Virus record (IMG/VR): IMGVR_UViG_3300014494_000005
Span: 284,924-348,923 of that record
Length of the DNA stretch: 64,000 bases
Direction: 5' to 3' (one strand)
Part shown: piece after piece, positions 7,325 through 36,803 of the stretch
Layout: each line of letters opens with the position of its first letter
Numbering within the stretch: position 1 is the stretch's first letter
Notes under the pieces: generated by a model
What the model was told of the DNA's origin: nothing
What the model saw: the letters and a program-made list of their open reading frames with translations, nothing else
The model's database searches: none
Translations under genes and position numbers: made by a program

Positions 7325-7416
7325 TGTCCAATGTACATAATAAAAGGTTACAATAAAATGTAACCTTTTATATTTTTTTACGTTTAACTATTATAAACCA
7401 ATAAAAACAAAGCAAA

Positions 7417-7629
7417 ATGGAAGTACCTAATATTATTACTGGAATTGACTGGAAGTTATTAAGAAAACAAAAAAGATTATTACTTCAAGTCATAAATAAT
7501 GATAATGTAAATTTTAAAGAAAAGGAAGCATTAGAAGGTATTTTAAATCTTATTGATGCAATACAGGATTATGCTGTTGATGATGCACAAATAGTCACAG
7601 AAATTGAGGTTTTCGGTAAGTTAAAATAA
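7417..7629 (+). CDS. hypothetical protein
   Basis: ORF track; own promoter and leader. Confidence 0.85.
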   Translation: MEVPNIITGIDWKLLRKQKRLLLQVINNDNVNFKEKEALEGILNLIDAIQDYAVDDAQIVTEIEVFGKLK

Positions 7630-7704
7630 TACTAATAAAATCATAATAACTATTTTCGTTCAATGTACGTAAACGAATTATTATAAACCAAAAAACACAA
7701 AGTA

Positions 7705-8271
7705 ATGATAAATTTTGAAACAATTTACAATGAGAACTATAATAATGTATTGAATTACATTAATAGTAAGATTAAAGACAGATTAACAGCCGAAGACCTA
7801 ACTGCAGAAGTGTTTGAAAAAGTGTACAAACATTTAGAAAGTGGTATTTCAGGTGCTTTTAATTCTGAAAAAGCAAAATTCAATACTTGGTTAATGGCAA
7901 TTACTAATAATCATCTTATTGACCATTTTCGCAAAACTGCAAATGATAACCGGGTTCAGAATGTCAGTGATTTTGTTAATGAAGAGGGTGATGAAATATT
8001 TCAATTTGTTGGTAGTAAAGACAGCGAAACCGATTTTGATATTAATGAAATTGAGCTTAAAAACAGACTTGACAAAGCATTTGATTCATTAAAACCTAAA
8101 TACAAAAGGGTTGCTGAATTATATTTCCGTAAGGAAATGAAATACATTGAAATTGCTGAAATGTGCCAGATTCCAATAGGTACGGTTAAAGCTACAATAA
8201 TGAGATGCAGGGAGATGTTACAAGCAGAATTAAAGAGTTTGCACAATGTTCGTAAAGTAGTAATGGCATAA
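7705..8271 (+). CDS. ECF (group IV) RNA polymerase sigma factor
   Basis: region 2 (AEDLTAEVFEKVY...FNTWLMAITNNHLIDHFRK) and region 4.2 HTH (KYIEIAEMCQIPIGTVKATIMR); 188 aa. Confidence 0.95.
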   Translation: MINFETIYNENYNNVLNYINSKIKDRLTAEDLTAEVFEKVYKHLESGISGAFNSEKAKFNTWLMAITNNHLIDHFRKTANDNRVQNVSDFVNEEGDEIFQFVGSKDSETDFDINEIELKNRLDKAFDSLKPKYKRVAELYFRKEMKYIEIAEMCQIPIGTVKATIMRCREMLQAELKSLHNVRKVVMA

Positions 8272-8330
8272 TGTAACCTTTTAGGGTAATGTACGTATAC
8301 TTATTATAAACCAATAAAAACAATAAAGCA

Positions 8331-8513
8331 ATGGAACGTAAAAATTGGATTGTTCGTTATTATGACAAAAAAGATGTTTTAATTAGTTCACATATAATTA
8401 AAGACAGAACCGACCACGAAGCCGAAAATGAAGCAATGGCAGATATGCCAGATAATTGTGATGATTGGTCAATGATTTCAGAAGAAGAAAATAAAAAATT
8501 GAGACCCAAATAA
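8331..8513 (+). CDS. hypothetical protein
   Basis: ORF track; promoter 8272 and leader TAAACCAATAAAAACAATAAAGCAATG. Confidence 0.85.
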   Translation: MERKNWIVRYYDKKDVLISSHIIKDRTDHEAENEAMADMPDNCDDWSMISEEENKKLRPK

Positions 8514-8562
8514 CAATTGTTCAATGTACATAAGTTACAAAACCAAAATAAACAATAAAGCA

Positions 8563-8748
8563 ATGCCAAATAAAAATGTTGTTAACGTATATCAAAAACC
8601 ATTAACCAATGAAGATTTTGAAGGACAAGCAGCTTTGATAAAGAAAGAAGATAATGTACAATCAAAACAACCCGGATATGAATATTGGTATGTACGTTTT
8701 CTTGATGAAGAAGCAAAAGTATTGAGATTAGTTAATATGAATTGTTAA
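8563..8748 (+). CDS. hypothetical protein (start moved to leader-associated ATG)
   Basis: leader AACAATAAAGCAATG ends at the ATG at 8563. Confidence 0.75.
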   Translation: MPNKNVVNVYQKPLTNEDFEGQAALIKKEDNVQSKQPGYEYWYVRFLDEEAKVLRLVNMNC

Positions 8749-8841
8749 ACCGGGTCAATGTACATAATAAAGGGTTGCTAATAATGCAACCTTTTTTAAT
8801 TTACTGCGTATACTCACTATAAACCAATAAACAATAAAGTT

Positions 8842-9087
8842 ATGACGACAAAAACAGCAGTAAGACCTTTGTACGAAATTGCAGAGGAAATCCGTAAAGA
8901 TTGGAAACCTGTAAACTATGCAGCTAAACCATATCTTGAAGCAATGTACAGCTTAAACAAAATTACTGACAATTACATTATGGATACTGGTAAAAGCATT
9001 GTAGCATATTTCCTTTGTAATGCAAGTTCTTGGAGAGGTGACGTTGCCAAACGTGTCAAAGCTGAATTGAATAAAATGATTAAGTAA
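8842..9087 (+). CDS. conserved hypothetical phage protein
   Basis: RPLYEIA.EI..DW...YAAKPYL.AM...WRG..AK.VK.EL pattern. Confidence 0.85.
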   Translation: MTTKTAVRPLYEIAEEIRKDWKPVNYAAKPYLEAMYSLNKITDNYIMDTGKSIVAYFLCNASSWRGDVAKRVKAELNKMIK

Positions 9088-9176
9088 TTAATCGATGTAC
9101 AATAAAAGAGGTTGCTAAATGCAACCTTTTTTATTTTATTGCGTATACTCATTCATAAACCAAAAACACAATTACA

Positions 9177-9665
9177 ATGAAAATAATTAACGGTAATTTT
9201 AAAGAAATTGATTATCCGGTTGGTGACCATATTCAAGAAAATATTCCCATTATTAATAATATGGGTATTAGAATTAAATCTATTTTAATTGAAAAGAAAT
9301 TAGAAAGTGATGACCAAATTAATCTAATTTGTAGTGGTAGTTCTGGTGCTATTATATCTTCAATTATAGCAACAATTCTTTATAAAGATTTTAAAGATGT
9401 TAATATTCGTCATATAAAAAAAGACGGTGAAAGTAGTCATGCAGCAGATAATTATAAATCTCATTTTTATAGTAGTTATTTTAATGGCTTTAATATTATA
9501 GTTGACGATTTTATTTGTAGTGGTGACACAATGAAACGTATCTTTAGTAAAATACGTGACGATATTCAAATTGATATAATTGCTATTAGTAAAATTAATA
9601 ATGGTTGTGAAAAAGTTATTAATTTTTTTAAAGAACAAAAAGTTAAGATATTATTAAGAGATTAA
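9177..9665 (+). CDS. type I phosphoribosyltransferase-fold protein, paralog 1
   Basis: PRPP-binding loop IIVDDFICSGDT; LICSGSSGAII. Confidence 0.8.
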   Translation: MKIINGNFKEIDYPVGDHIQENIPIINNMGIRIKSILIEKKLESDDQINLICSGSSGAIISSIIATILYKDFKDVNIRHIKKDGESSHAADNYKSHFYSSYFNGFNIIVDDFICSGDTMKRIFSKIRDDIQIDIIAISKINNGCEKVINFFKEQKVKILLRD

Positions 9666-9724
9666 TGTAACCTTTCTAACTAAAGTCCGTATACTCATAT
9701 ATAAACCAAAAAAACAATAAAGCA

Positions 9725-10201
9725 ATGAAAACAATACACGCAGATTTTACAACAATAAAATATCCTGTTGGTGACTATATTCAATACAATATTCCAATTA
9801 TTAAGTATATGGGAGATAAAATCAAATTAATTCTAATTGAAAAGAAATTAAATACCGATGCACAAATTAATTTGATTTGTAGTGGTTCATCTGGTGCTAT
9901 TATTGCTTCAATTATTGCAACAATTCTTTATGATAAATTTGAAAAGGTATGTATTCGTTACATAAAAAAAGATGGTGAAAATAGTCATGGATTTAGTTAT
10001 ATGTGTAGTGAATGGTTTAAAGGTTTTAATATTATTGTTGATGATTTTATTACTACTGGTGCAACAATGAAATATATTTTTAATAAAATCAATAATAATA
10101 CTAAAGTTGATTTAATTGCTGTTAGCGAAATTGATTGTGATTGGCTTAATAGTATTAATTATCTTAGAAAAAAGAAAGTTGGAATTTTATTAACTAAATA
10201 G
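9725..10201 (+). CDS. type I phosphoribosyltransferase-fold protein, paralog 2
   Basis: IIVDDFITTGAT; closely similar to preceding ORF. Confidence 0.8.
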   Translation: MKTIHADFTTIKYPVGDYIQYNIPIIKYMGDKIKLILIEKKLNTDAQINLICSGSSGAIIASIIATILYDKFEKVCIRYIKKDGENSHGFSYMCSEWFKGFNIIVDDFITTGATMKYIFNKINNNTKVDLIAVSEIDCDWLNSINYLRKKKVGILLTK

Positions 10202-10257
10202 TAACTTTTTTACTTAATGTCCGTATACTCATTATAAACCAATAAAAACAAAAAGCG

Positions 10258-10611
10258 ATGAATCAAATTAATGAAAAAATTGATTATCAGAAAATCACAA
10301 AGAGTTGCAGAAATCTGAATGTAAAAGAACTTATGCAATTACTTCATATTAACGTTTCGATTTTCTGGTCATGGGGTGCTCATGCCTTCATAGTTGACGA
10401 CAAACGCAATACCAGAATGTTTAGAATGGCTGTGCAAGGAAATCATCATAACGGTCATGTATATATCTTTGTAAATGGTTTGGATTTATTTGATGTTTAT
10501 CTAACCACATTGCAGGGAACTATTAAGGACAAAATTGAAGGATTGTACTTTGACCAATTAGTTGAATGGATTGACGAGAAAATTGAAAAAATTCCTGCTT
10601 ATTCACATTAA
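10258..10611 (+). CDS. conserved hypothetical phage protein
   Basis: ORF track; own promoter and leader. Confidence 0.85.
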   Translation: MNQINEKIDYQKITKSCRNLNVKELMQLLHINVSIFWSWGAHAFIVDDKRNTRMFRMAVQGNHHNGHVYIFVNGLDLFDVYLTTLQGTIKDKIEGLYFDQLVEWIDEKIEKIPAYSH

Positions 10612-10616
10612 GAAAT

Positions 10617-10640
10617 AAGGGACAGATTGTCCCTTTTTTT
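10617..10640 (+). terminator. intrinsic terminator
   Basis: AAGGGACA-gat-TGTCCCTT plus T run. Confidence 0.8.
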
Positions 10641-10701
10641 GTCCCTTATAATGTAACTTTTTTATTTAAAATTCGTATACAATTATATAAAAACAAAAGC
10701 A

Positions 10702-10920
10702 ATGTTAAAACCAATTGACATAGGAACGTTAATAAGAACGCCAGTTAGTGAATTACAAAAACACGTAGTTGAATTATTTCATAATACCGATGAATATAAA
10801 ACCGAAGTTATTATAAATGGTGGTGAGATATTATATTCACCTTGTGGAATGTTCATTTATCTTTATAATGAAAATCTGGATACATTAAATTGGATGTTAG
10901 AACTTGGTATATTAAATTAA
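10702..10920 (+). CDS. hypothetical protein
   Basis: ORF track; own promoter. Confidence 0.8.
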   Translation: MLKPIDIGTLIRTPVSELQKHVVELFHNTDEYKTEVIINGGEILYSPCGMFIYLYNENLDTLNWMLELGILN

Positions 10921-10970
10921 ACTGTAACATTTTTGTATATTGTCCGTATAATAAACTAAAACCAAAAGCA

Positions 10971-11339
10971 ATGGAAAAAATAGAAATTACAATCAGTCAG
11001 GAATTAACTCCGCAAGATATCAATGATATTGTTAGTACAGCATTAGAAGGTGGTATTAATTACTGGTGCGGTGGAGCAATTATTAAAGATGTACCCGCAA
11101 AAGCAGAAGGAAAATATGATTTTGCAAGTGATGTTATTTCAGTTGGTGGAACGCTTGAATTATACGATGCAGAAAGTCCTGACAGATGGGAACTAAATCT
11201 TGAAAAATTATTAAATGGAATTAAAATGCATTGTACAAAAATTGGTAAAACTCCATTAGAACTAATGGATGATTATGATGCCTGTGATGCTGATTGCATT
11301 GTACAATATGCAGTAATGGGAGAAATAGTATTTGGCTAA
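10971..11339 (+). CDS. conserved hypothetical phage protein (start moved to 10971)
   Basis: promoter 10923 and leader AAAGCAATG; DIVSTALEGGINYW...DACDADCIVQYA..GEIVFG. Confidence 0.85.
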   Translation: MEKIEITISQELTPQDINDIVSTALEGGINYWCGGAIIKDVPAKAEGKYDFASDVISVGGTLELYDAESPDRWELNLEKLLNGIKMHCTKIGKTPLELMDDYDACDADCIVQYAVMGEIVFG

Positions 11340-11383
11340 AAATATAATCATTAGTTTTGTTTCATTGTCTTTATATTGGTTTG

Positions 11384-11424
11384 CCCCTGTGCTTCATTTA
11401 ACCAGAATGACACAGGGGTTTTTT
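11384..11424. terminator. terminator between convergent genes
   Basis: CCCCTGTG...CACAGGGG plus T run. Confidence 0.75.
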
Positions 11425-11752
11425 ATGCTTCATATTTTAAGATATAATTTTGTATTTCGTGGTTACTTAAATGTACAGTTTTTTGTTTGTGTTTACTGTC
11501 ATTAATAATTGTAATGATAAATTCGTTCTTCAATGTACTATAAGTAATTTTTAGTATCCTATCATACCAAAAATTAAAGTTTTCGATATTGTACTTAATA
11601 TCTAAAACTGTGCTAATCATAGTTTTTAGTTCGTTCATCATAGTATAGTGTTTGTTCATTACATAATTACTACATTTCGTCACAAATTCCAAATAAAAGT
11701 AGATGATAGAAATCATCATTTTATATGTTTCTTTAGCTATAATAATGTACAA
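11423..11752 (-). CDS. hypothetical protein inserted against block orientation (start uncertain)
   Basis: ORF track. Confidence 0.6.
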   Translation of the reverse strand: MYIIIAKETYKMMISIIYFYLEFVTKCSNYVMNKHYTMMNELKTMISTVLDIKYNIENFNFWYDRILKITYSTLKNEFIITIINDSKHKQKTVHLSNHEIQNYILKYEA

Positions 11753-11824
11753 GTTTTATTTAAAATAACGTAACCTTTTTAATTAAAAACCGTATATACT
11801 AATGTACTAAAAATAAAACATATT

Positions 11825-12133
11825 ATGGAAAATCTAAATGAAAAACAACAATTAATTTCTTTATGTTATAAAGAAGTTAAACCAAATAATTTTGTTAAAA
11901 CAATTGGTTTTCATTTACTTCATTATAATATGGAAACTAAAAAATGGAGTAATTATTTTTTAGGTAAAAATGACCAAATTTGTATATGGCAGACTGTTAA
12001 ATATGAACAAACAGAATTTAGTACTTTATCTGCATTTCTTAGATACACAGAATGTTTTACAAAAACTACATTTTATAATACAGATACAGATTTTTCTATT
12101 TTAACACTTCTTGAAGTTTTTTCTAATATGTAA
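11825..12133 (+). CDS. hypothetical protein
   Basis: ORF track; own promoter. Confidence 0.8.
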   Translation: MENLNEKQQLISLCYKEVKPNNFVKTIGFHLLHYNMETKKWSNYFLGKNDQICIWQTVKYEQTEFSTLSAFLRYTECFTKTTFYNTDTDFSILTLLEVFSNM

Positions 12134-12193
12134 ATTGTAACCTTTTTAAATAAAATCCGTATTATCTACATAAACCAATAAAAACAGAAAGCA

Positions 12194-12754
12194 ATGGAAG
12201 CAGTTAAAACAATTCAGTACAAAAATCACATTATTAATATCATTCCAGATGAATTTTATAATAGTGATACTATGCTTGGCGAAGATGAAGAAGTATTTTT
12301 GCTTTATTATCACAGGGACTTCTACATTAAAAAAGATGGTTTTCCTGAACCTAAATCAAATGAAGATATTAAAGCATTGAAAAAAGATTATTTCTTATTT
12401 ATTGTCTATGCTTATATTCATTCAGGCGTTTCATTATCACTTGGCAATGATACATATCCTTTCAATGACCAGTGGGACGTTTCAAATTGTGGTTATGTTT
12501 TAATTAAAAAAGATTCTGGTATTGATAAACCCAGAGAAGCAGCACAATCATTGATTGATGAATATAATGATGTATTGTCCGGCAATGTTTATGGTTATCA
12601 AGTTACTTTTAATGATGAAGTAACTGATAGCTGTTGGGGTTTTGTTGGTGATATTGACAAGTCTGGCATTATTGATGAAGCAAAAGGAATTATTGATTAT
12701 AATGTTGAACACAATAAGGAAAAATTTGCTGAACAATTGACATTGGAATTATAA
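12194..12754 (+). CDS. conserved hypothetical phage protein
   Basis: YAYIHSGVSLS...WD...G..YGY...DSCWGFVG pattern. Confidence 0.85.
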   Translation: MEAVKTIQYKNHIINIIPDEFYNSDTMLGEDEEVFLLYYHRDFYIKKDGFPEPKSNEDIKALKKDYFLFIVYAYIHSGVSLSLGNDTYPFNDQWDVSNCGYVLIKKDSGIDKPREAAQSLIDEYNDVLSGNVYGYQVTFNDEVTDSCWGFVGDIDKSGIIDEAKGIIDYNVEHNKEKFAEQLTLEL

Positions 12755-12853
12755 AACAACATTGTTCAATGTACATAAAAGAGGTTGCTATAATGCAACC
12801 TTTTTAATTAAAATCCGTATACTATTATTATAAACCAAATAAAACAAAACAAA

Positions 12854-13192
12854 ATGGAAAAGATAATAACTAATAAAATTTTGACAATAAAGGCATACAT
12901 AGCATTTGCTGAATTTGTTGCAAAACCTGAAAATCTAAATTCATTAATAACCAAATTGGAATTAATTGAAAAAGAAATTAAACGAGGTAAAAATACCGAT
13001 AAAGGTTTATGGTTTAGATTTTTTAAAGGTGATACTGCAGCCACAACAATTGATAATTTGAAAGATACATTTGAAATCGAAACGCCAATGTACATAAGTA
13101 GTACTTCAACAGCCAAAAAAAATAAAGAATATATGATTGAAAATATTTGTATTGCTTTAAATGAAGTATCTTTACAATTATATTATTCATAA
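12854..13192 (+). CDS. hypothetical protein
   Basis: ORF track; own promoter. Confidence 0.8.
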   Translation: MEKIITNKILTIKAYIAFAEFVAKPENLNSLITKLELIEKEIKRGKNTDKGLWFRFFKGDTAATTIDNLKDTFEIETPMYISSTSTAKKNKEYMIENICIALNEVSLQLYYS

Positions 13193-13269
13193 ATCGTAAC
13201 TATTTTAAATAAAATCCGTATACTCATTATAATTAAGTTACAAGTATAAACCAATAAAAACAAAAAGCA

Positions 13270-13803
13270 ATGGGACAATATTACAAACCAGTGAATTTAG
13301 ACAAAAAGAAATTTGTTTATTCACACGACTACGGAAACGGTCTTAAATTAATGGAACATTCTTGGATTGACAATGATTTTGTTGCAATAGTTGAAAACCT
13401 TATTAAAAAAGGTGGCGACTGGTACGGCAATAGAATTGTTTGGGCAGGTGACTACGCTGAAAATGAACCAAAAAGAGAACACAATCTTTATCACATTGTT
13501 GGTGAAAATAAAATCACTCCCAATACAAAAAGAAATCCAAAACTCCGGTATTTAAAAAACTTAGATACAAAAGAATTTGTCAATCTCAGCAAAGTACCTG
13601 TAAGTGACGTTTATAACAATTTTAAATTCAGGATTCACCCTCTACCATTATTAACTTGTGAAGGTAACGGACAAGGTGGTGGCGATTACTTTGGCGAAGA
13701 TAAAAACAAATTGATTGGAAAATGGGCAAGAAACAGGGTTACAATACAATCACATAAACCCAAAGATGGAATTGAAATTGTTTTTGATTTGATTGAAAAA
13801 TAA
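13270..13803 (+). CDS. conserved hypothetical phage protein
   Basis: MGQYYKPVNLD...GLKLMEH...RIVWAGDYA pattern. Confidence 0.85.
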   Translation: MGQYYKPVNLDKKKFVYSHDYGNGLKLMEHSWIDNDFVAIVENLIKKGGDWYGNRIVWAGDYAENEPKREHNLYHIVGENKITPNTKRNPKLRYLKNLDTKEFVNLSKVPVSDVYNNFKFRIHPLPLLTCEGNGQGGGDYFGEDKNKLIGKWARNRVTIQSHKPKDGIEIVFDLIEK

Positions 13804-13931
13804 TCATTGTTCAATGTACATAAAAAGAGGTTGCTAATAATGCAACCTTTTTTATTTAAAATATATTCGTATATTTGTAACTATTTTATTTAAGATTCGT
13901 ATATACTAATATAAACTAAATAATAAAAATC

Positions 13932-14828
13932 ATGAGCAGACGAGTTAAAAAAACCAAAGTAGGTGCAACAGTTTGTACCATTGGCGACCTTCAATTTGAT
14001 GTTGAAATTCGCAACGAAACAATGACATGTAATAAAGAATATAGCCGTAAGGTTATAGGACAAATTAATGGCAGTGATTTTCTTTTAAATCAGTGTTCAG
14101 ACATTTACACCTTGGTGAAAAATACTGACATATTCCCAAACATTGAAAAGGTGTTAAATGATAATAATATCAAATTCAGTGTAACATATTCTCACATTAA
14201 CAACGTCAGATTTTATGCTGACTATATCATTGAAGACCAACGTTATTCTTATCACATGAATGGCACAACCGATTATGTTAAACCAATGTTAAGAGTTCAA
14301 CATTCTTACAATGGATTAACTAAATACAGAATTGTTTTCGGTTATTACCGCCTTGTTTGTACCAATGGAGCTACTATTCCAGTAGAACAAATGAAAAATT
14401 TCAATCTTTGTATTGTTGGAAAACATACTTTATCAATTGAACGTAGCTTTAATGAACTTGATAAAATGTTGAAGAACTTTGCTGTCAATGCAAAACAGAT
14501 AACCGAAGAAATAACTGCAAAGTACGAGTTACTTGGTGGTCGTATGGTTACCAAACTTGAAGACCGGGTAAAAGAAGTATTGAACGCTGTTAAAATACCA
14601 ATAGTTGATAATTCAAAGTTTAGTACATTGAATTACATTATAGGTAAAGCAAAAAATGAAGCAGATGACAGCGTTGGAAATCTTGGCTATCATGGAGTAG
14701 TAAACGATTTTCTTGTGTATAATGCAATTAATCAATACTTAAATGATAATAGTCGTAATATTGCCGTTCCTGAAAAACGTATGGAAACAGATTCAAAAGT
14801 ATTTGAATATATGCTTGAAAATGCTTAA
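13932..14828 (+). CDS. DUF932-like protein
   Basis: PMLRVQHSYNG...FGYYRLVCTNG signature (recalled). Confidence 0.7.
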   Translation: MSRRVKKTKVGATVCTIGDLQFDVEIRNETMTCNKEYSRKVIGQINGSDFLLNQCSDIYTLVKNTDIFPNIEKVLNDNNIKFSVTYSHINNVRFYADYIIEDQRYSYHMNGTTDYVKPMLRVQHSYNGLTKYRIVFGYYRLVCTNGATIPVEQMKNFNLCIVGKHTLSIERSFNELDKMLKNFAVNAKQITEEITAKYELLGGRMVTKLEDRVKEVLNAVKIPIVDNSKFSTLNYIIGKAKNEADDSVGNLGYHGVVNDFLVYNAINQYLNDNSRNIAVPEKRMETDSKVFEYMLENA

Positions 14829-14904
14829 GCAATGTACAAAAAAAAATGACCTTGTATTGTAACAAATGCAGGGTTTTTTCGTATAATAATTATAAAACAA
14901 AATA

Positions 14905-15078
14905 ATGGATAAAGAACTTGATGCACTTATGTTTGCAGTAAATGAGAAAGCAAATAAATCGAATGAAATTATGAATCAAAGTACTAGTGACATTGAAGAA
15001 TATAATTTTCATAAAGGTCAGTTTCAAGCATATTCAGAAGTTTACACTATGCTCGATAATATTAGGCAATCTTTGTAA
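14905..15078 (+). CDS. small hypothetical protein (57 aa, below ORF-track cutoff)
   Basis: MDKELDALMFAVNEK...NIRQSL after promoter 14858. Confidence 0.7.
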   Translation: MDKELDALMFAVNEKANKSNEIMNQSTSDIEEYNFHKGQFQAYSEVYTMLDNIRQSL

Positions 15079-15132
15079 CATATTGTCCAGAATTTCGTAT
15101 AATTATTATAAACCAATTAAAAAAATAAAGCT

Positions 15133-16020: not shown

Positions 16021-16341
16021 ATGAACAAAAGAAATGCTATTATAGGTATCAAAGATATCATTAAGAAATATGGTGAAACTACCTCAATATATCTTAAGCT
16101 CAAAATTGAAGATAAACCTTGCTTAAGTTTAATTGTTAAAGGTAAAGAAATAAAATGTATATTTGTCGAATTGTATAATAAAGATAGTGTTACTGCTATT
16201 ACCAATATTAATGGTTATTTTAAAGAAAGTAATATTATTCCTTATGAAAATATTCCTGAACCAATATTAAATCAAATACTGAAACTATTAAAACATTACG
16301 AAAAAAGAAAAGTAGGAAATAAATACTTTGATATTTTGTAA
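16021..16341 (+). CDS. hypothetical protein
   Basis: ORF track. Confidence 0.75.
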   Translation: MNKRNAIIGIKDIIKKYGETTSIYLKLKIEDKPCLSLIVKGKEIKCIFVELYNKDSVTAITNINGYFKESNIIPYENIPEPILNQILKLLKHYEKRKVGNKYFDIL

Positions 16342-16388
16342 CATTTTTAATTAAAATCCGTATAATCATATATAACATTTAAATAACT

Positions 16389-16911: not shown

Positions 16912-17421
16912 ATGAGTATTGAAAATAAAAATGAAAAGCGTAGACAATATTATGCTAAAAATAAAGAAAAAATAATTAAACAAGGAAAACAATGGCGTAT
17001 TAATAATAAAGAAAAGGTTAAAAATAATAAAAGACGATATTATTTAAAAAATAGAGAAAAAATTAAACAACAATGGATTGATAATAAAGAAATTCATAAA
17101 GAATATTATCTTAAATATTGGGACAGATATAAACAATATCGTATTGATAATAAAAAGAAAATAAAAGAAAGTGCAGTAAATAGAATTTATAAAATAACAC
17201 CAGAAAAACAAAACGAATTATATGTTAAACAAAATGGTTGTTGTGCTATATGTGGTATACCAGAAGATAAATTAAACTATTTTTTATCTATTGACCATAA
17301 TCATAAAACTAAAAAAGTAAGAGGATTGTTATGTCATACTTGTAATAGAGGCATTGGATTACTTAAAGATAATATTAATATATTACAAAAAGCAATTGAT
17401 TATATAAAAAATAGTAAATAA
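16912..17421 (+). CDS. endonuclease VII-like HNH nuclease (homing-type)
   Basis: QNGCCAICG...IDHNH...VRGLLCHTCNRGIG; K/Y-rich repeat N-terminus. Confidence 0.9.
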   Translation: MSIENKNEKRRQYYAKNKEKIIKQGKQWRINNKEKVKNNKRRYYLKNREKIKQQWIDNKEIHKEYYLKYWDRYKQYRIDNKKKIKESAVNRIYKITPEKQNELYVKQNGCCAICGIPEDKLNYFLSIDHNHKTKKVRGLLCHTCNRGIGLLKDNINILQKAIDYIKNSK

Positions 17422-20130: not shown

Positions 20131-20450
20131 TAATTAAAAACTTTATAATATGAATACATATCTTATTCTTTCATTTATTTTATTCCTGATATTAGGAATA
20201 TGTTGGACTAAAAGTAATTTCCTAAACCTTATAGTTAAAATTCTCTTATTTGGTATGGGAATTGTTGGACTTTTCTTGTGGTTACAATTAAATGGCTACA
20301 TTATAAAGATACATTAATATACTAATAGAATGTCCGTTCCATATTGTACAATAGGTATAATATTATTAATACTGTTTTGTATTGTACATGAAACATATTT
20401 AAAATATAAAAAGAAACACTAACCTTTTGTATTTATACAAAAGGTTTTTT

Positions 20451-20822
20451 ATGAATGTACTAAACCAGAATGTACTTGATAACTATGTTTCTTATTTAAA
20501 AAATAATAAATATAAGAATGTACTGCAGGAATTAAAACTTGATTATGATAGTGAAAATGGTACTGATTTCATCTTCCTGCTTTTAATTAAAATCAAACGA
20601 CATGAACATAATAAAGGTTGGGGTTCAAAAGTTCTTAAAGATATTGTACAAGTAGCTAATAAATATAATGTACAAGTCAGACTTTGGATAACAGCTATCT
20701 ATGGAATGAATTTAAATAGATTAATGAAATTCTATATGAAACAAGGTTTTGTCTTAGACCACGATGATTATATGATATACACACCAAAAAAAATTAGAAA
20801 AAATTGTAACAAATTAGAATAA
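20451..20822 (+). CDS. GNAT-like acetyltransferase (start moved to 20451)
   Basis: HNKGWGSKVL (motif A-like) and LMKFYMKQGF. Confidence 0.65.
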   Translation: MNVLNQNVLDNYVSYLKNNKYKNVLQELKLDYDSENGTDFIFLLLIKIKRHEHNKGWGSKVLKDIVQVANKYNVQVRLWITAIYGMNLNRLMKFYMKQGFVLDHDDYMIYTPKKIRKNCNKLE

Positions 20823-20855
20823 TATTCGTATCATTGTACATAAATTAGAAAAAAT

Positions 20856-21059
20856 ATGACAACAACATTAACAATAATCTTATACATATTTCTTTATCTT
20901 ATTGTTGGAAGAATATATACTAATCTCATGAAAAGTGATGAGTATGAAAATGCAGTTATTACTATCTTCTATCCAATAATAATCGTATGGAAAATTGCAA
21001 TGAGTATTGCTGATAATATAACAAACATTTTATTTAAAAAAAGTTCTAAAGATATTTAA
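20856..21059 (+). CDS. small membrane protein
   Basis: two hydrophobic segments; promoter 20805. Confidence 0.75.
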   Translation: MTTTLTIILYIFLYLIVGRIYTNLMKSDEYENAVITIFYPIIIVWKIAMSIADNITNILFKKSSKDI

Positions 21060-21067
21060 GAAACAAA

Positions 21068-21343
21068 ATGCCAACCGTAGTCTGACTGAAAATGATTTAC
21101 TATAGCTAAGTTGTCAAGTAAGTAGATGGTAGTCTTCGGACGGGAATTGAACTGTATTGTGGAGTAACGCACTCCAAAAGAGTAAGGCAGCTTAACGAAC
21201 TGCATACAGTGATGATATTCTTACGGCAATGGTTATTCGATGAGTGAGTTGCTACACTCCAAATTGCAATCGAGTAGAAAAACCCCTGTTATTCCCTGAA
21301 ACTGCACTTAGTACAGATATAAAAAGGAATTGCGGGGGTTTTT
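21068..21343 (+). ncRNA. candidate large structured RNA
   Basis: GC-richer ORF-free stretch with nested helices and a C(UUCG)G tetraloop. Confidence 0.6.
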
Positions 21344-21368
21344 CCTTTTAAAATACTTGATAAATTCA

Positions 21369-21472
21369 AAAAGTTGTTGTAGCTTTACAGCAGCTTTTTG
21401 TTTTTAGTGTTGTTCAAACCACCTGCTTTTATTTCATCTTTCATAAGTTAATTATTTTGCAGGTGGTTTTTT
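21369..21472 (+). terminator. two further tandem terminators
   Basis: AAAAGTTGTTGTA/TACAGCAGCTTTT (GU pairs work on + strand) and AAACCACCTGC/GCAGGTGGTTT plus T runs. Confidence 0.75.
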
Positions 21473-21525
21473 TATTTAATATTGTAACATTTTTAATTAA
21501 AATCCGTATAATATATTAATAAAAG

Positions 21526-22832: not shown

Positions 22833-23210
22833 ATGAGAACAAAAGAAGAAATATTAGAATATAATAAACAATATAAATTAAGAAATAAAGATAAGGTTGC
22901 AAAACATTGCGCAAAATATTATCAATTACATAAAAAAGAAATAAGTAAACGTTCAAGAATTGCTACAATAAAAGAACATGGATTAACATTAGACCAATAT
23001 GATGTTATTTTTAATAAACAGAATGGTAAATGTGTTATTTGTGGCAGACATCAAAGTGAATTAAAATTAACATTAGCTGTTGACCATGACCATATATCTG
23101 GTAAAGTAAGAGGATTATTATGTAATACCTGTAATCGTGGTATTGGTTATCTTCATGATGATATTAATTTATTAGAAAAAGCAATTCAATATATAAAAAC
23201 TAATCGTTGA
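22833..23210 (+). CDS. endonuclease VII-like HNH nuclease
   Basis: QNGKCVICG...VDHDH...VRGLLCNTCNRGIG. Confidence 0.9.
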   Translation: MRTKEEILEYNKQYKLRNKDKVAKHCAKYYQLHKKEISKRSRIATIKEHGLTLDQYDVIFNKQNGKCVICGRHQSELKLTLAVDHDHISGKVRGLLCNTCNRGIGYLHDDINLLEKAIQYIKTNR

Positions 23211-23253
23211 TTTTGTAACATTTTTAATTAAAATCCGTATAATATATAATAAT

Positions 23254-23409: not shown

Positions 23410-23955
23410 TTATTGATTGATGAATTGTTCATTCTTTTTCTTTACAGTAATTTCATATCCAAGAACATTTAACACTTTTTTAATATTATAAAATCTTGCT
23501 TTTTTATTACCATTTTCAATCATACTTAAAGTAGGTCTACTAATTTTTGCCATTTTACATATATCTTCCTGACGAAGATTTTGATAATTTCTACTTTCTT
23601 TAATTGTTTTACTAATTATTTGTATATCTGCATCTTCAAATATATATTCTTTTTTACTTATAATATTATCTGCATGATTATGTGCAACATTTAATAAATA
23701 ACATCCCTCATCTATTGATTTTTTTATCCATTCTTTTTCTTTTTCATCAAGATTATTTTCATCACATTCTTCCAGTATTTTAATAACTGGTTTATATCCT
23801 AATATTTTTAATTGGAAAACCCATTCATTAATTTTTTCAGAATGTGATTCAGTCATGTGTTGCTTGGGTCTTATCATATATTTACTACTCTTTCCTATAT
23901 AATGTAAATTATTTGTAAAGGGACAATAAAGACCATAAATTAAATTTTTATTCAT
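23410..23955 (-). CDS. GIY-YIG domain plus XRE HTH protein
   Basis: LIYGLY...HYIGKS; C-terminal LRQEDICKMAKISRPTLSMIENG. Confidence 0.8.
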   Translation of the reverse strand: MNKNLIYGLYCPFTNNLHYIGKSSKYMIRPKQHMTESHSEKINEWVFQLKILGYKPVIKILEECDENNLDEKEKEWIKKSIDEGCYLLNVAHNHADNIISKKEYIFEDADIQIISKTIKESRNYQNLRQEDICKMAKISRPTLSMIENGNKKARFYNIKKVLNVLGYEITVKKKNEQFINQ

Positions 23956-29998: not shown

Positions 29999-31300
29999 AT
30001 GAAGAAAACAATAAAAGATTTTACACCTGAAATTCAAAGTAAAATTCCTGAATACATTACTAAATATACTAAAGGAATTGATAATGGTGAAAGATATTAT
30101 AATTTTAAATTTGAAAATGCTGAAAAACTAATTAATTGGAATTATGAAAAATGTGGTTTTAAAAAACCTGTTGTTTTGGTTGTTGAAAATATTTATGAAC
30201 AACAAATATTTTTTAATTTTATTGTCGCAAATAAAGAAAAGTATTTTCCAATTCTTTATTTGATATATAATCTAAAAAATAATATGAATGACGAAATAAA
30301 AAAATTTATTAAAAATTTAAAAAAGAAAAACAAGGGCAATACACTCTACAATACACTCGACAATACACTCGACAATACACTACGCAATACACTCTACAAT
30401 ACACTCGACAATACACTCTACAATACACTACGCAATACACTCTACAATACACTCGACAATACACTCTACAATACACTACGCAATACACTCTACAATACAC
30501 TACGCAATACACTACGCAATACACTCTACAATACACTCGACAATACACTCGACAATACACTAAAAGTCTATAATAATTTATATTTATTTACAACAAATGT
30601 TTATTCAAATGCTATATTAGCTTGGTGGAAATTTATTAAAGATGAATTTAAAATTGATTGTGGAGAAATTGGAATTACTTTGGATTCTTGGAATGATATG
30701 TATTTAGAATCTGGTGTATATTCAACAATATTTTCTGAATTATTATGTGTTGTTTCAAAATATCCTAAAAAGATATGTAGAGATAATAATAACAATTTAC
30801 ATAATACAAATGGTTTAGCTGTTGAATGGGGATATATTATTGAAGAAACAAAATTTGATTGTTATTATATTCATGGTAGACAAATGCCTAAACAGATTTT
30901 CGAAAAATATCAAAATAATTTATTAACAAAAGCAGATTTTATTAATGAAACTAATGAAGACGTTAGGGGTGGAATATACGAAATAATTGAAAGCAAAGGA
31001 GAGGGTGAAATGATGAAATTTCTTGGAGCAATTGAGGTGGACAGAAAAACGATTAAACATGCAAAAGGAAATGAAGAATTTATATTATATAAAACCAAAG
31101 AAGTTTTTAATGAAGAACAAGATTTAAATGATAAATCTCCTGCAGCTTTGGCTTGGTTAAAAATGACTTGTCCAAGTACAGGACAGAATTATTTAATACC
31201 AACTGATAGTAGTTTTACAAATTGTATTGATGCTGCTAAATATCATAGACCTGATGAAATACCAAAAGAATTAGAATATTTTTGGAATAGTAGAAATTAA
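29999..31300 (+). CDS. DUF6745-like protein with NTL[Y/D/R] tetrapeptide repeats
   Basis: LHNTNGLAVEWG...YIHG...CPSTGQNY C-terminal pattern (recalled). Confidence 0.7.
   Translation: MKKTIKDFTPEIQSKIPEYITKYTKGIDNGERYYNFKFENAEKLINWNYEKCGFKKPVVLVVENIYEQQIFFNFIVANKEKYFPILYLIYNLKNNMNDEIKKFIKNLKKKNKGNTLYNTLDNTLDNTLRNTLYNTLDNTLYNTLRNTLYNTLDNTLYNTLRNTLYNTLRNTLRNTLYNTLDNTLDNTLKVYNNLYLFTTNVYSNAILAWWKFIKDEFKIDCGEIGITLDSWNDMYLESGVYSTIFSELLCVVSKYPKKICRDNNNNLHNTNGLAVEWGYIIEETKFDCYYIHGRQMPKQIFEKYQNNLLTKADFINETNEDVRGGIYEIIESKGEGEMMKFLGAIEVDRKTIKHAKGNEEFILYKTKEVFNEEQDLNDKSPAALAWLKMTCPSTGQNYLIPTDSSFTNCIDAAKYHRPDEIPKELEYFWNSRN
30338..30565 (+). repeat. 19 x 12-bp coding tandem repeat
   Basis: AATACACTCTAC x7, AATACACTCGAC x6, AATACACTACGC x5, AATACACTAAAA x1. 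Confidence 0.95.
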
Positions 31301-32766: not shown

Positions 32767-35070
32767 ATGAAATATGGTGTTAATAATTATTCAGATGTTG
32801 AAACACTAACAACAACAGAAGAAAGAGAAATTACATTATCATCAGACTGCCAATCAATTATTTTTCAAATGTTTTCTAAAAATATTTATAGTAATCCTAT
32901 TGGGAGTGTTGTACGTGAAATAACTTCAAATAGTTTTGATTCGCATATCGAAGCAAAAGTCAATGCACCTGTTTTAATTAAAAGAGGTTATGACAAACAA
33001 ACTAATAGTTATTATATTTCTTTTATTGATTATGGGGTTGGTATGTCACCAAAACGTATTGAAAAGGTGTTTTCTGTTATGTTTAATAGTACTAAACGTA
33101 TTGATAATGAACAAATTGGTTGCTTCGGCTTGGGGTCCAAAACCCCTCTGGCTTATAAGCGTAGTACTGGTTTTGGAGAAGGAGAATATGATAATTCTTA
33201 TTCTATTATTACAATATTTAATAAAATTAAATACATATATCAAATATATGAAGGTAAAAATTCTCCTAAAATATCTTTATTGCACAGCGAATCCGTGAAC
33301 GAACACAACGGTACTGAAATTCGTATACCTGTATTAGAGAAAGACCTACAGACATTTGCAAAAGAAATGGTACGTCAACTCTATTATTTTGAAAACGTTA
33401 TTTTTGAAGGTTTTGATAAAGACGAAAGTCATTATGAAGAAACTTTGACAAATGAATATCAAATTATCAGGGGTAAATCTTTCTTATTCAGAGGAAGTGA
33501 ATACAGCGAAAAAATGCACGTATGTTTAGGCAGGGTTGCATATCCGATAGACTATACTGTACTTGGTTTAAGTTCAGGTGATTATTACCTTCCAGTTGCA
33601 GTAAAACTTGAAGTAGGAGAAATAGGTGTAACAGTATCGAGAGAAAGTCTGGATTACAGTGAAACTACGATTAAGATATTAAAGAAGAAATTGGAAGCAG
33701 CAAAGAAAGAAATTATGGAATTAATCACCAAGCAGTATCAGAATGTACAGACATTGGAAGATTACTTTAATGTAAAACATAATTTTGGTGTATTGATTTT
33801 CAGTAATGGTAGCAGTATTAATACTGGCAATCTTATTAAACAATCTGATGTTGATTTCTCAAATTTCAAATACAGTTTTATGAAGATGCCTTCTGACAGG
33901 CATTTGTTTAAGTTCTTTTTCAAGTCTCGTACTTATGGTAAGAAACCCCGCAAAAGTCGTTATAGTAATAATGGTTATGAATTTGACGGTGGTTATGATG
34001 AATTACAAAAGAATAAAAACTTATTATATTTTGAAGATACTTTTGTTCGCAAGATTGTTAAGCAAGCATATTTAAAGTCTTTGTATGAAATGTATCATAT
34101 TATTGAAAAACGCAATATTGCTGATAATTGCTTGCGTCATGAAATTGCTGAACTTTTTAATGTAGCAATTGATAATACTTGTGATGCTAACGGCAAACCA
34201 ATTGCTTATGTTCAGACCTTGCTTGAAATGCAGGAAGAATATTTTGAAATTGTACGCAAGTATGCACAGGATTATGATAAAATAGAAGTACCGGAAGATT
34301 TTGTAATTGACAGAAAGAAAAACTCAATGTCCAAAGACTTACGTAATACAACTATTCCTGTTAAGTTCGTAGGTGGATATTCAAAATACAGAATTAAACT
34401 TGAAAATCTTTTTGATTATAATTGTCCGATTTTCTATGGCAATCAGGGTGATGAAACTAAATTGCATGAAATCTATAGAATATTCACAACATTATTTGGT
34501 GAAGATATTCCAGTTACTTTTTACAGTGATTATGACCATCAGTTTGAAAATAGAAGGTCTGGCAAGTCAAATAAGAAAAGTATAATGTTCATCATATTGG
34601 CTGAAAACAACCTTAAATATATGCAGTATTGCAAGAAAGCATATAAGATAGACCAGTTCTTTCAGAAGATATTGTACAGGAAATCTGATGCTGTTATGCA
34701 GTATTTTCAAACCAATAATATTATCGAAAAATTTCGTAGCATTCAGGAATTATATACAAGCAAATCATTTATCAAAATAGATACCAAATGGGGTAAGAAA
34801 ATAAATGATATAAAAGCCAGTATTGATGCAATTCCTGCAAAAGGTAGAGAAGATAAGATTGGTGGTATTAAACCGTATTTATCTACTTATTTTGACTTGT
34901 CAAATATAAAAATGACTGCAGTACAAAAGAAATTGGAAAAGCAAATTGACGAAGTTCTGGCATTACAGGCAAAGAATGAAAAGGTTTTACAGTACATTAA
35001 TTTACCATATAGAATTGAAAGTCTTGATGATAAATTAATTACCATCTTACAAGTAGTAATGGAATTTTAA
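32767..35070 (+). CDS. rIIA: rIIA-like protein (GHKL/HSP90-type ATPase N-terminus)
   Basis: VVREITSNSFD, DYGVGMS, GCFGLG.K, NGTEI; 767 aa; rIIB-like gene downstream. Confidence 0.85.
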   Translation: MKYGVNNYSDVETLTTTEEREITLSSDCQSIIFQMFSKNIYSNPIGSVVREITSNSFDSHIEAKVNAPVLIKRGYDKQTNSYYISFIDYGVGMSPKRIEKVFSVMFNSTKRIDNEQIGCFGLGSKTPLAYKRSTGFGEGEYDNSYSIITIFNKIKYIYQIYEGKNSPKISLLHSESVNEHNGTEIRIPVLEKDLQTFAKEMVRQLYYFENVIFEGFDKDESHYEETLTNEYQIIRGKSFLFRGSEYSEKMHVCLGRVAYPIDYTVLGLSSGDYYLPVAVKLEVGEIGVTVSRESLDYSETTIKILKKKLEAAKKEIMELITKQYQNVQTLEDYFNVKHNFGVLIFSNGSSINTGNLIKQSDVDFSNFKYSFMKMPSDRHLFKFFFKSRTYGKKPRKSRYSNNGYEFDGGYDELQKNKNLLYFEDTFVRKIVKQAYLKSLYEMYHIIEKRNIADNCLRHEIAELFNVAIDNTCDANGKPIAYVQTLLEMQEEYFEIVRKYAQDYDKIEVPEDFVIDRKKNSMSKDLRNTTIPVKFVGGYSKYRIKLENLFDYNCPIFYGNQGDETKLHEIYRIFTTLFGEDIPVTFYSDYDHQFENRRSGKSNKKSIMFIILAENNLKYMQYCKKAYKIDQFFQKILYRKSDAVMQYFQTNNIIEKFRSIQELYTSKSFIKIDTKWGKKINDIKASIDAIPAKGREDKIGGIKPYLSTYFDLSNIKMTAVQKKLEKQIDEVLALQAKNEKVLQYINLPYRIESLDDKLITILQVVMEF

Positions 35071-35081
35071 TAAAAGTAATT

Positions 35082-35528
35082 ATGGAAACTGTTGTTGCCA
35101 AGATATTCAAAGATTTAACTGATGTTGGTATTAATAAAGCAATGGGATATTTGCCTTTAAATACAATTGTTCAATATGGTAGTGATGTACAGATATTTAT
35201 TGATTGGGCAAATGCTTCAAACCTACATTTTGAATTAGCAAGTGAAAATAAATCTAAGGTTTGGTCTGGAGCATTATTTATTTGGGATGACAAAATGCTT
35301 ACAGAAATACTTGAAAAGTATAAAACAATATTAATGGAAGCAAAAATTCCTACAACTCCCAATGAATATGTTAATCATATTATAAGAAAGACAGTATTTT
35401 ATGATAATTTTCCTCTGGCATTTATTGTAATTGGCTTTACTTTTAATGATAGCAGATTTACTGGCAAGGGTGATAATCTTGAGGAAATTAGTAGGGAATT
35501 TGATAAAATTTATTATAAAAGAAAATAA
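35082..35528 (+). CDS. hypothetical protein
   Basis: ORF track. Confidence 0.8.
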   Translation: METVVAKIFKDLTDVGINKAMGYLPLNTIVQYGSDVQIFIDWANASNLHFELASENKSKVWSGALFIWDDKMLTEILEKYKTILMEAKIPTTPNEYVNHIIRKTVFYDNFPLAFIVIGFTFNDSRFTGKGDNLEEISREFDKIYYKRK

Positions 35529-35588
35529 TAAATAGTTTTAATAATATATTCAAAAATAATTTGTATAATTGCATATTATTTAATAATT

Positions 35589-36023
35589 ATGGAAGAAACA
35601 TTAATTTCACTGAAAACAGCTAAATTAGCTAAAGAAAAATTATTCAATATAATAACTAGTAACAAATATCTTAAAGTTGGTGGAGTACAATTTTTATGTG
35701 AATATGACTCGCTTGCTAATAGTTATTATTGTCCTTTATTAAATGACCATATAATTGAATATGATGAATCTATTAATGTCTCTAATCAGTCATTACTTCA
35801 AAAGTGGTTACGAGAAGTACATAATCTTCATGTTATTATTCAACCTGAATTTTATACCACAGGAATAAATTATTGTGTTCAGGTTCTTTGTTATGCACCT
35901 GAATTAGAAGATTGTGAAGACAATAATAAATGCACTGGTATGTATGGTGATAATGGTGAATATCCAACATATGAAGAAGCATTGGAATTTGGGTTACAAT
36001 TAGCATTAAATTTGATTAAATAA
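35589..36023 (+). CDS. tandem paralog 1 of 4
   Basis: ISLKTAKLAKEK...QSLLQKWLREVH...YEEALE.GL. Confidence 0.85.
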   Translation: MEETLISLKTAKLAKEKLFNIITSNKYLKVGGVQFLCEYDSLANSYYCPLLNDHIIEYDESINVSNQSLLQKWLREVHNLHVIIQPEFYTTGINYCVQVLCYAPELEDCEDNNKCTGMYGDNGEYPTYEEALEFGLQLALNLIK

Positions 36024-36025
36024 TT

Positions 36026-36801: not shown

Positions 36802-36803
36802 CT

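Follow-up and report, generated by a model that had tools for sequence, protein, structure and literature searches.

Bacteriophage T4 encodes two small stable RNAs, RNA C and RNA D (species 1 and 2), which lie 3' of a tRNA gene in the order tRNA-Arg, rnaD, rnaC, and which are co-transcribed with the tRNA and cut out of the transcript. They are 119 and 139 nt long and have been classed as late in T4 reports, and a T-arm-like sequence can be read in RNA C. Their function is still not known, a question that is by now decades old (PMC3014915, PMC9697503). Here we describe the locus of a structured RNA at positions 21060 to 21349 of a 64,000-nucleotide stretch of DNA (referred to as the window, to which all positions refer), which forms the last 64 kb of the 348,923-bp IMG/VR virus record IMGVR_UViG_3300014494_000005. 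We are highly confident that this locus represents a real, processed family of non-coding RNA (ncRNA). The fuller reading that we prefer, to which we assign a probability of about 0.5, is that it specifies a stable structured ncRNA which is cut from a precursor and acts in trans, and whose family is new and, within the searches made here, restricted to a single clade of T4-type jumbo phages.

GOLLD and ROOL are ornate, highly expressed RNAs of phages and prophages that are often found beside tRNA genes and whose function is not known. In MALAT1/mascRNA and in the tRNA-miRNA units of gammaherpesviruses, a tRNA-like module shares one transcript with a functional RNA that is not a tRNA, and the P4 CI and P1 C4 RNAs are processed by RNase P. 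Hairpin and VS ribozymes have their scissile site in a conserved internal loop and carry a second conserved loop on a neighbouring arm. Finally, directly 3' of phage tRNA genes lie the HDV-like theta ribozymes, structured RNAs which are proposed to cleave at their own 5' edge and thereby to set the end of an RNA (PMC10879173). Their fold is a minimal nested double pseudoknot, and their distance from the tRNA does not exceed +/-5 nt.

In two peat metatranscriptomes from 2024, assembled contigs with 100% identity to the window covered positions 21075-21311 (depth 3933) and 21086-21299 (depth 4202), compared with a depth of 3-22 for contigs of neighbouring genes. Four further runs from other studies of peat and bioreactor communities contained contigs that were likewise 100% identical, spanning 21077-21318 (5137 and 820), 21075-21305 (348), 21086-21306 (1939) and 21076-21299 (19.5), and nothing else within +/-400 nt. 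Across the six runs, the flanks were covered 0-22x and the RNA 20-5100x. The open reading frame (ORF) immediately upstream, ORF67, had a depth of 4-22x versus about 4000x on the RNA. At least 17 RNA runs, from many samples, contained a share of 0.74-0.81 of the sampled words of 21064-21350, which fits the contig boundaries. The accumulating RNA is a discrete molecule that extends from C21075 to at least 21299-21318, is present at hundreds of times the level of the neighbouring mRNAs, and has a size of roughly 240-270 nt. An initial annotation of the window, made from sequence alone, had proposed a phage ncRNA here and had made this dependent on a transcript and on conserved structure in homologues. 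Both were found: identical contigs over about 21075-21311 reach 5100x with flanks near zero, and 15 homologues with strong covariation exist (see below). The observation is confirmed, and the interpretation supported.

The contigs of the six runs start at 21075, 21075, 21076, 21077, 21086 and 21086. Since the start at 21075-21077 is unchanged from 20x to 5000x, it is a hard boundary and not a taper of coverage. Contigs of the upstream gene, in the two runs where they were seen, end at 21071 and 21073, so that together with the RNA starts both products of a cut near A21074/C21075 are visible. On the other side, the contigs end at 21299-21318, in the apical part of hairpin H4 (Table 1). Illumina adapter sequence follows directly after 21311 in run X16 and after about 21314-18 in run X19, and the type of adapter after 21311 fits RNA of the + strand if the libraries were dUTP-stranded. 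Run X19 also contained a second contig over 21077-21225, at 18.5x beside the identical contig at 5137x and with 10 differences in 150 nt. It represents the RNA as encoded by a related strain, also expressed in that sample.

No promoter motif was found between ORF67 and the RNA, the nearest upstream one being at 20806-20834. Because a promoter directly 5' of the RNA is lacking, and because in the relatives a tRNA-like element stands between promoter and RNA, we conclude that the RNA is cut from a longer precursor. Promoter 20806-20834 most likely drives this ORF67-RNA transcript. The description of the RNA as stand-alone in the initial annotation is correct for the molecule, for which there are a transcript and 15 covarying homologues, and incorrect for the transcription unit, which the RNA does not have to itself.

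Relatives of the window phage were gathered via the capsid protein, which gave 80 IMG/VR contigs with 75-100% amino-acid identity. Partial matches to the RNA were found by BLAST in four of them. Compensatory changes were already visible in a five-sequence alignment, from which the covariance model R1 was built. R1 identified single copies in eight related IMG/VR records, and 7 of the 13 near-complete related genomes searched (8 of 14 if the window's own genome is included) contained the RNA. Six more members came from JGI metagenome contigs, by a scan with an anchored pattern and R1 as filter; of the 50 pattern matches, 41 were due to chance. The family has 15 members in total, with R1 scores of 31-223 bits, and all of them occur in related T4-type jumbo phages with Gp23 capsid and rIIA. 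The same pattern gave 31 matches in 185,579 prokaryote genomes, all by chance, and a scan with a conserved 21-mer returned known members only. A second covariance model, restricted to the 3' domain, yielded nothing new from 38 related genomes. Only the identical phage came up when IMG/VR was scanned with a pattern and when the downstream 339-aa ORF served as a protein query, and BLAST against cultured-phage GenBank records gave no match.

In the 15-member alignment, standard pairs were present in 94.2% of cells, compared with 36-48% when the partners were slid by 1-3 columns. Double-sided changes occurred in 35 of the 47 modelled pairs, and none of 500 shuffles reached the observed values. Helix H2 had compensatory changes in 5 of 7 pairs and 99% of cells paired. 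It was also recovered by an independent MAFFT/RNAalifold analysis of the 3' domain, with UA, CG, AU and GC at single positions. Compensatory changes were further present in 4 of the 5 pairs of H3, in 17 of the 19 stem pairs of H4 and in its small apical hairpin, and covariation also backs the GCAG/CUGC hairpin of the central domain (helix 4). In P1b, A-U is replaced by G-C in one member and G-U alternates with A-U, G-U being present at the first pair in 9 of 15 members. These data show a fold conserved by covariation, in which P1b, an internal loop and P1a close a variable domain, followed by H2/H3 and then H4. P1b covaries even though its 5' strand is lost from the mature RNA, and must therefore form in the precursor. 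The frequent G-U pairs, the better z score of the + strand (see below) and the orientation of promoter and terminator place the RNA on the + strand.

The invariant core has the form RCC-A-A-CCG / CGG-CAA-UGG-UUA and is followed by a 7-bp helix, a hairpin and the long terminator-like hairpin. All 15 members keep the motif RCCAACCG, and in all of them the 5' side has an invariant CC and CCG, the 3' side an invariant CGG and GG, and H2 the same first pair, UA. The UGGU of P1b is CGGU or GGGU in two members. P1b and P1a are separated by a 1x3 internal loop, A21074 opposite C21227-A21229. There is no linker between P1b and H2, and only one or two purines stand between H2 and H4. The H4 internal loop reads CUGAAACU / AGAUAUAAAA in the window (family form UGAAACU opposite AGAAUCRAAC), and its word GAAACT is kept in 13 of 15 members.

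The remainder of the RNA is variable. The members range from 133 to 290 nt, and in the nine that were compared the domain between the P1a strands extends from 18 nt in relative G007 to 146 nt in the window, a difference which suggests that the central arm is dispensable. Five members share a central architecture of one hairpin plus a stem around two or three hairpins, and the UUCG hairpin arm (about 21081-21140) is an expansion peculiar to the window phage. A pseudoknot between a loop GAGUAAC and GUUACUC at the start of H2 was dropped because it could be drawn in three close members and not in others. A mini-ORF from the AUG at 21068 was rejected, as this AUG is absent in about half of the members.

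The minimum free energy (MFE) of the + strand over 21060-21350 is -79.9 kcal/mol (z -3.45, with none of 200 shuffles as good), and the z score of the - strand is -2.33. The region is GC-richer, as the initial annotation had stated, with a G+C content of 0.33-0.41 compared with 0.20-0.27 in the surroundings. The helices that it had listed are present at the positions it gave: CCGUAG 21075-80/UUACGG 21221-26, GUC-UUCG-GAC 21132-41, ACUGUAU 21151/AUACAGU 21204, GCAG/CUGC, GAGUG 21242/CACUC 21255, and AAAAACCCC 21278/GGGGUUUUU 21335. The GGAGU/ACUCC pairing of the initial annotation is not the one suggested by the relatives, whose sequences point to GUG/CAC together with a variable hairpin (ACUC/GAGU in the window). 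The hairpin at 21277-21344 had been taken for the first of several terminators. It is indeed terminator-like, with a CCCC/GGGG stem core followed by U21339-43, as expected of an intrinsic terminator, and was missed by a simple terminator scan (4 sites found versus 0.3 expected) because of its long loop. Beyond that role, it is a conserved part of the family with a conserved internal-loop sequence. The two further terminators that had been announced, each with a T run, were found as well. The pattern of the third has one exact match in the window and none in shuffles, a hairpin like it also stands 3' of the RNA in relative G011, and no RNA contig covers 21417-21475.

A search of the whole window against Rfam 15 gave no match at the gathering score and none that was credible at E <= 10. 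The best sub-threshold matches were ohsC (25 bits, threshold 50) and SAM-V (22 bits, threshold 41), and covered only the terminator or a short word. Membership in any Rfam 15 family was accordingly rejected. The absence of tRNA and tmRNA noted in the initial annotation was borne out by ARAGORN, which predicted 0 such genes in the window. The region is free of long ORFs, as claimed, and not of short ones, since ORFs of 49 aa (- strand) and 35 aa (+ strand) overlap it (all ORFs used in the analysis are open under table 11). The sole argument against coding by these two is that indels between family members are of arbitrary size. The RNA is single copy, and no internal or genomic repeats of it, and no similarity to it elsewhere in the genome, were found.

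Table 1. Coordinates of the RNA, its parts and the adjoining signals in the window.
Feature	Positions	Strand	Basis or remark
Phage-type promoter motif, GTAAC-N16-CGTATC, near-consensus variant	20806..20834	+	repeat family D20
ORF67, 67 codons, small hydrophobic protein	20856..21059	+	ORF list
A-rich linker, P1b 5' strand (G21070-A21073) and unpaired A21074	21060..21074	+	removed from accumulated RNA
P1a 5' strand, pairs with 21221-21226; C21075 is the observed 5' end	21075..21080	+	contig starts
Variable central domain: expanded UUCG-hairpin arm, then ACUGUAU/AUACAGU stem around two or three hairpins	21081..21220	+	MFE fold
P1a 3' strand (21221-26), unpaired CAA (21227-29), P1b 3' strand UGGU (21230-33)	21221..21233	+	alignment
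Helix H2 (21234-40 / 21270-76) bearing hairpin H3 (21242-46 / 21255-59)	21234..21276	+	covariation
Long 3' hairpin H4 (21277-21344), terminator-like, with small apical hairpin and U run	21277..21349	+	covariation
Second intrinsic-terminator-like hairpin (21367-21400), 15-pair stem, and T run	21367..21405	+	terminator scan
Third terminator-like hairpin (21417-21468), AACCACCUGC...GCAGGUGGUU, and U run; 'copy B' of the initial annotation	21417..21475	+	single exact match in window
Next phage promoter motif, start of the following transcription unit	21484..21512	+	motif scan

A tRNA or tRNA-like domain lies at a fixed short distance 5' of the RNA, in the same promoter-terminator unit, in most members. 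In seven of the eight IMG/VR relatives, the T-loop motif GGTTCRAnTCC occurs 23 nt before the start of the model and is followed by the 3' strand of an acceptor stem. The T-arm of the eighth, G011, is located further upstream. T-arm and acceptor could be read at the same place in three of the six metagenome loci, two of them with Rfam support, and altogether such a domain abuts the 5' side of the RNA in at least 10 of 15 members. When the relatives were searched with Rfam, the only matches were to tRNA or tmRNA, all on the upstream element: tRNA matches adjoin the RNA in L122 and L185, and sub-threshold tmRNA matches of the tRNA-like-domain type were obtained in L120, L119 and L189. The upstream elements fold into cloverleaves with aberrant anticodon loops, or into forms without an anticodon arm, and are not part of the conserved RNA core. 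In the relatives, a phage promoter with the same motif as in the window lies 5' of the tRNA-like element and a further one 3' of the RNA, and the unit holds nothing but the tRNA-like domain and the RNA. The ancestral unit therefore appears to have consisted of promoter, tRNA-like domain, short A-rich linker, RNA and terminator.

In the window, the place of the tRNA-like domain is taken by ORF67, which has only weak PHROG matches, to families of unknown function. The order of ORF and then RNA was also found in metagenome locus L209, by reading of the upstream frame. The RNA is cut at the equivalent place despite this replacement, from which it follows that what determines the cut lies in P1 of the RNA itself and not in the tRNA-like module. 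In relative G006 (L120, about 1170-1400), the tRNA-like element is preceded by three direct repeats, each about 36 nt long (GTTGTAAACAACCACAAATTGAAAGGTACTTACAAC), and by another element that bears a T-loop.

The RNA resembles T4 RNA C and RNA D in that it is a small stable RNA of a T4-type phage which accumulates, as seen here in metatranscriptomes, and which stands 3' of a tRNA gene in the majority of members just described, the window copy with its ORF67 being different in this respect. The members are 133-290 nt long, and the RNA is located among early-type promoters upstream of rIIA, whereas the T4 RNAs have the lengths and the late classification given above. The models R1 and R2, run with filters off, gave no significant match to T4 rnaC/rnaD. 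The only gene-strand match inside the T4 RNAs was a 29-nt fragment of rnaC (7.3 bits, E 0.047) that aligned just the two ends of the model. Homology was rejected, as only a few short words (UGGUU, CUGAGUA, GGAAUUGCG) are shared and no model matches. T4 RNA C and RNA D are thus the nearest analogues of the RNA and not its homologues, and the RNA is a new family within a long-unexplained kind, the tRNA-linked stable RNAs of T4-type phages. This kind gains a second, independent and much richer example, in which 15 diverged members define an invariant core and a minimal version of 133 nt shows which parts are dispensable. The processing site is mapped in a conserved loop, and the core is small enough for direct study in vitro. 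In natural communities of peat and bioreactors, the RNA also ranks with the most abundant transcripts of phage origin.

Like the theta ribozymes, the RNA is found directly 3' of phage tRNA genes, but it is much larger and accumulates heavily. The equivalent of C21075 lies 7-12 nt past the discriminator base, outside the +/-5 nt from the tRNA 3' end that characterize theta cleavage (PMC10879173). The HDV/theta pseudoknot (P1, P1.1, P2, P3, P4, with a catalytic C in J4/2) was not recognized: no HDV-type Rfam match was obtained, and the 18-nt hairpin of G007 leaves no room for P2 and P3. Hairpin-ribozyme cleavage at N/GUC opposite AGAA, with its essential +1 G, was not found either, since +1 is the paired C21075 and the opposite strand is CAA, and Rfam gave no match. 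The RNA resembles hairpin and VS ribozymes in architecture, with catalysis only hypothetical here. GOLLD and ROOL are 500-800 nt long and have unrelated folds, and no Rfam match links them to the RNA. As in maturation of the MALAT1/mascRNA, P4 CI and P1 C4 type, ends are set by site-specific processing at the start of a helix. Unlike in maturation driven by a tRNA-like module, the cut lies 7-12 nt past the tRNA-like 3' end and persists where an ORF replaces the module.

Several other classes were considered and rejected. A TnpB omega RNA was rejected because the tnpB genes are about 31 kb away and the RNA has no similarity to their 3' flanks or elsewhere in the genome, a Ro-associated Y RNA (YrlA) because the 349-kb genome encodes no TROVE domain and Rfam gave no match, and a type III toxin-antitoxin RNA (ToxI-like) because the RNA is single copy and has no tandem repeats. 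A T-box leader was rejected because RF00230, the model that captures Stem I, the specifier loop and the T-box sequence, had no match at E <= 10 and the unit contains no regulated gene.

The reading that we prefer can be put as follows. Transcription from the phage promoter would give a precursor made up of the tRNA-like domain (here ORF67), the RNA as its 3' part, and the terminator. P1b, formed in the precursor, would present the cut site, and one endonucleolytic cut at A21074/C21075, in the invariant 1x3 loop between P1b and P1a, would free the RNA. The cut is probably made by an RNase P-type endonuclease, encoded by host or phage, which reads a helix start with an unpaired -1 nucleotide, the RNA itself being the other candidate. 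As a guess, the mature RNA may act in trans and stoichiometrically, as a scaffold or decoy that binds protein via the invariant junction CAAUGGUUA, single-stranded after the cut, and via the conserved H4 internal loop. The variable central arm might then be a dispensable decoration. This guess is based on the high abundance, the invariant unpaired nucleotides and the dispensable variable arm, and we consider a trans-acting, protein-binding function a tentative proposal.

Several points weigh against this reading. The expression data are assembled metatranscriptome contigs and not reads, so that exact ends, end chemistry and strand are indirect deductions. In the older run X17, a contig over 20761-21198 (depth 444) bridges the cut site, which means that an uncut precursor exists or that the cut is conditional. 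The 3' arm of H4 (21319-21344) is never covered, and the 3' end is at about 21311-21318 or at about 21345. Either the real end is in the H4 loop, with the 3' piece perhaps still annealed, or random priming fails in a very stable stem, about 20 bp long. Scattered end positions speak for priming failure, the total absence at 5000x for a real end in H4. The alignments used for the pair counts were fitted to the model. The RNA is present in only 8 of 14 complete related genomes and is thus not essential to the clade. Finally, a conserved protein partner was not found, the adjacent GNAT-like gene having a distribution that does not follow that of the RNA.

It is conceivable that the conserved core is a self-cleaving ribozyme of a new class, cutting at CCAA/CCG behind the tRNA-like gene (here the ORF) and so trimming its 3' trailer, a role proposed for the theta ribozymes. 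The abundant RNA would then be the stable 3' product with a 5'-OH, strong structure and a terminator, and perhaps itself functional. The observed 5' end lies in an invariant internal loop between two covarying helices, the sequence is invariant beyond the needs of pairing, and, given the second conserved loop on the neighbouring arm H4, the two loops would be able to dock as they do in hairpin or VS ribozymes. There is precedent for ribozymes adjoining phage tRNAs (PMC10879173), and the cut in the window phage RNA in the absence of a tRNA-like domain means that tRNA 3'-processing enzymes are not required. Even so, we consider such a class behind jumbo-phage tRNA-like genes unlikely. No known ribozyme family in Rfam matches the window or the relatives, the minimal G007, with only a plain hairpin enclosed by its P1 strands, does not accommodate an HDV-like topology, and C at +1 departs from the N/GUC rule of the hairpin ribozyme. 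A length of 130-290 nt is large for a processing ribozyme, the cut is 7-12 nt past the tRNA-like 3' end and not at it, and run X17 contains the uncut contig. The molecule could also be a by-product, i.e. a structured 3' untranslated region with terminator that survives because 5'-to-3' or endonucleolytic decay of an early transcript stalls at the first stable helix, without activity beyond termination and 3' protection. C21075 is the first nucleotide of this helix, P1a, three stacked terminators follow 3', and rRNA-depleted metatranscriptomes favour any very stable RNA. Such a remnant would not keep invariant unpaired nucleotides, a covarying P1b upstream of its end and a conserved H4 loop across 15 diverged members. 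The upstream fragments ending at 21071-73 point to an endonucleolytic cut and not to a stalled exonuclease, and in the relatives the unit has its own promoter and encodes only the tRNA-like domain and the RNA. We therefore regard this explanation as improbable.

A cis-acting riboswitch or attenuator, i.e. a leader that senses a ligand or tRNA and chooses between termination at H4 and read-through, would account for the multi-stem, aptamer-like fold followed by a terminator. It would also account for the abundance, which is common among terminated leaders, and for rIIA downstream in several relatives, and the pairing of UGGU with ACCA recalls the pairing of the T-box bulge with a tRNA 3' end. 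This possibility is very slight, given that UGGU is CGGU or GGGU in two members, that neither the T-box nor any other riboswitch model matches, and that no conserved alternative anti-terminator pairing exists. Moreover, two more terminators and a fresh promoter precede the next gene, a promoter follows the RNA in the relatives too, and what stands before the RNA is an ORF or tRNA-like domain with a processing site and not a transcription start. The overlapping small ORFs and the nearby homing-endonuclease genes might suggest that the locus is no RNA gene at all and is instead a small-protein gene or a DNA element such as an origin, a packaging site or a homing-endonuclease target. Compensatory changes including G-U, indels of arbitrary length and a discrete RNA whose level exceeds that of its flanks hundreds of times effectively refute this. 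If the RNA is catalytic, it would be a new ribozyme class; if it is a decoy or scaffold, as our preferred reading has it, it would point to a host or phage protein that is titrated with RNA by jumbo phages.

The window phage encodes a Gp23 major capsid protein of the T4 type, has a genome with a G+C content of about 27% and 33 tRNA genes, and its DNA is present in many peat and permafrost metagenomes. Its own promoter motif, GTAAC-N16-CGTAWW, occurs 22 times in the window versus 0.25 times expected by chance (for example at 8273-8299, 16338-16364, 21484-21510 and 23215-23241). Its spacing is fixed, implying a 19-nt spacer that is unusual for sigma-70, and the motif is nearly always on the coding strand, shortly 5' of ORFs. 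The promoter and the start codon of many early-region genes at 7386-15130 (repeat families D12, D15, D18 and D19) are joined by a conserved leader, TATAAACCAATAAAAACAA...GCAATG, that lacks a Shine-Dalgarno sequence. The word AAACCAA in it is similar to the 5' leader of the RNA (AAAA[U]RCCAA), the pairing partner of UGGU, and a target relation is conceivable at most.

The conserved early-type region around the RNA has the order GP88-like gene, two unknown genes, small GNAT-like gene, RNA, rIIA (32767-35070). The GNAT-like gene (20427-20822, + strand) is directly 5' of the RNA unit in several relatives. Its product has a confidently predicted small GNAT fold (pLDDT 89), with weak fold matches to NatD, to tRNA-acetylating toxins of the TacT/AtaT type and to the anti-CRISPR protein AcrVA5. 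A functional pairing of gene and RNA was rejected, since the gene is absent from two RNA-bearing genomes and present in two without the RNA, and we treat their proximity as synteny only. Also near the RNA are two paralogous genes with Endonuclease VII domain (16912-17421 and 22833-23210, 72% DNA identity over 219 nt) and a gene with HTH_3 and weak GIY-YIG matches (23410-23955, - strand). They look like insertions of the homing-endonuclease type that break synteny with the relatives.

The genome further contains two TnpB (IS605 OrfB / Cas12f-like) genes on the + strand (52068-53216 and 54604-55845). A 433-aa ORF without Pfam match (29999-31300) includes about 18-26 tandem copies of a 12-nt unit at 30289-30597, which would imply a repetitive protein segment of four residues. 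Four copies of a 125-nt segment, about 400 nt apart at 35521-37094 (repeat families D4 and D13), suggest a tandem array of small paralogous genes. Among the 33 tRNAs is one with anticodon CUA (G000:C1:268386-268463, outside the window), an amber suppressor labelled 'Pyl' by ARAGORN, which hints at possible recoding of TAG late in infection.

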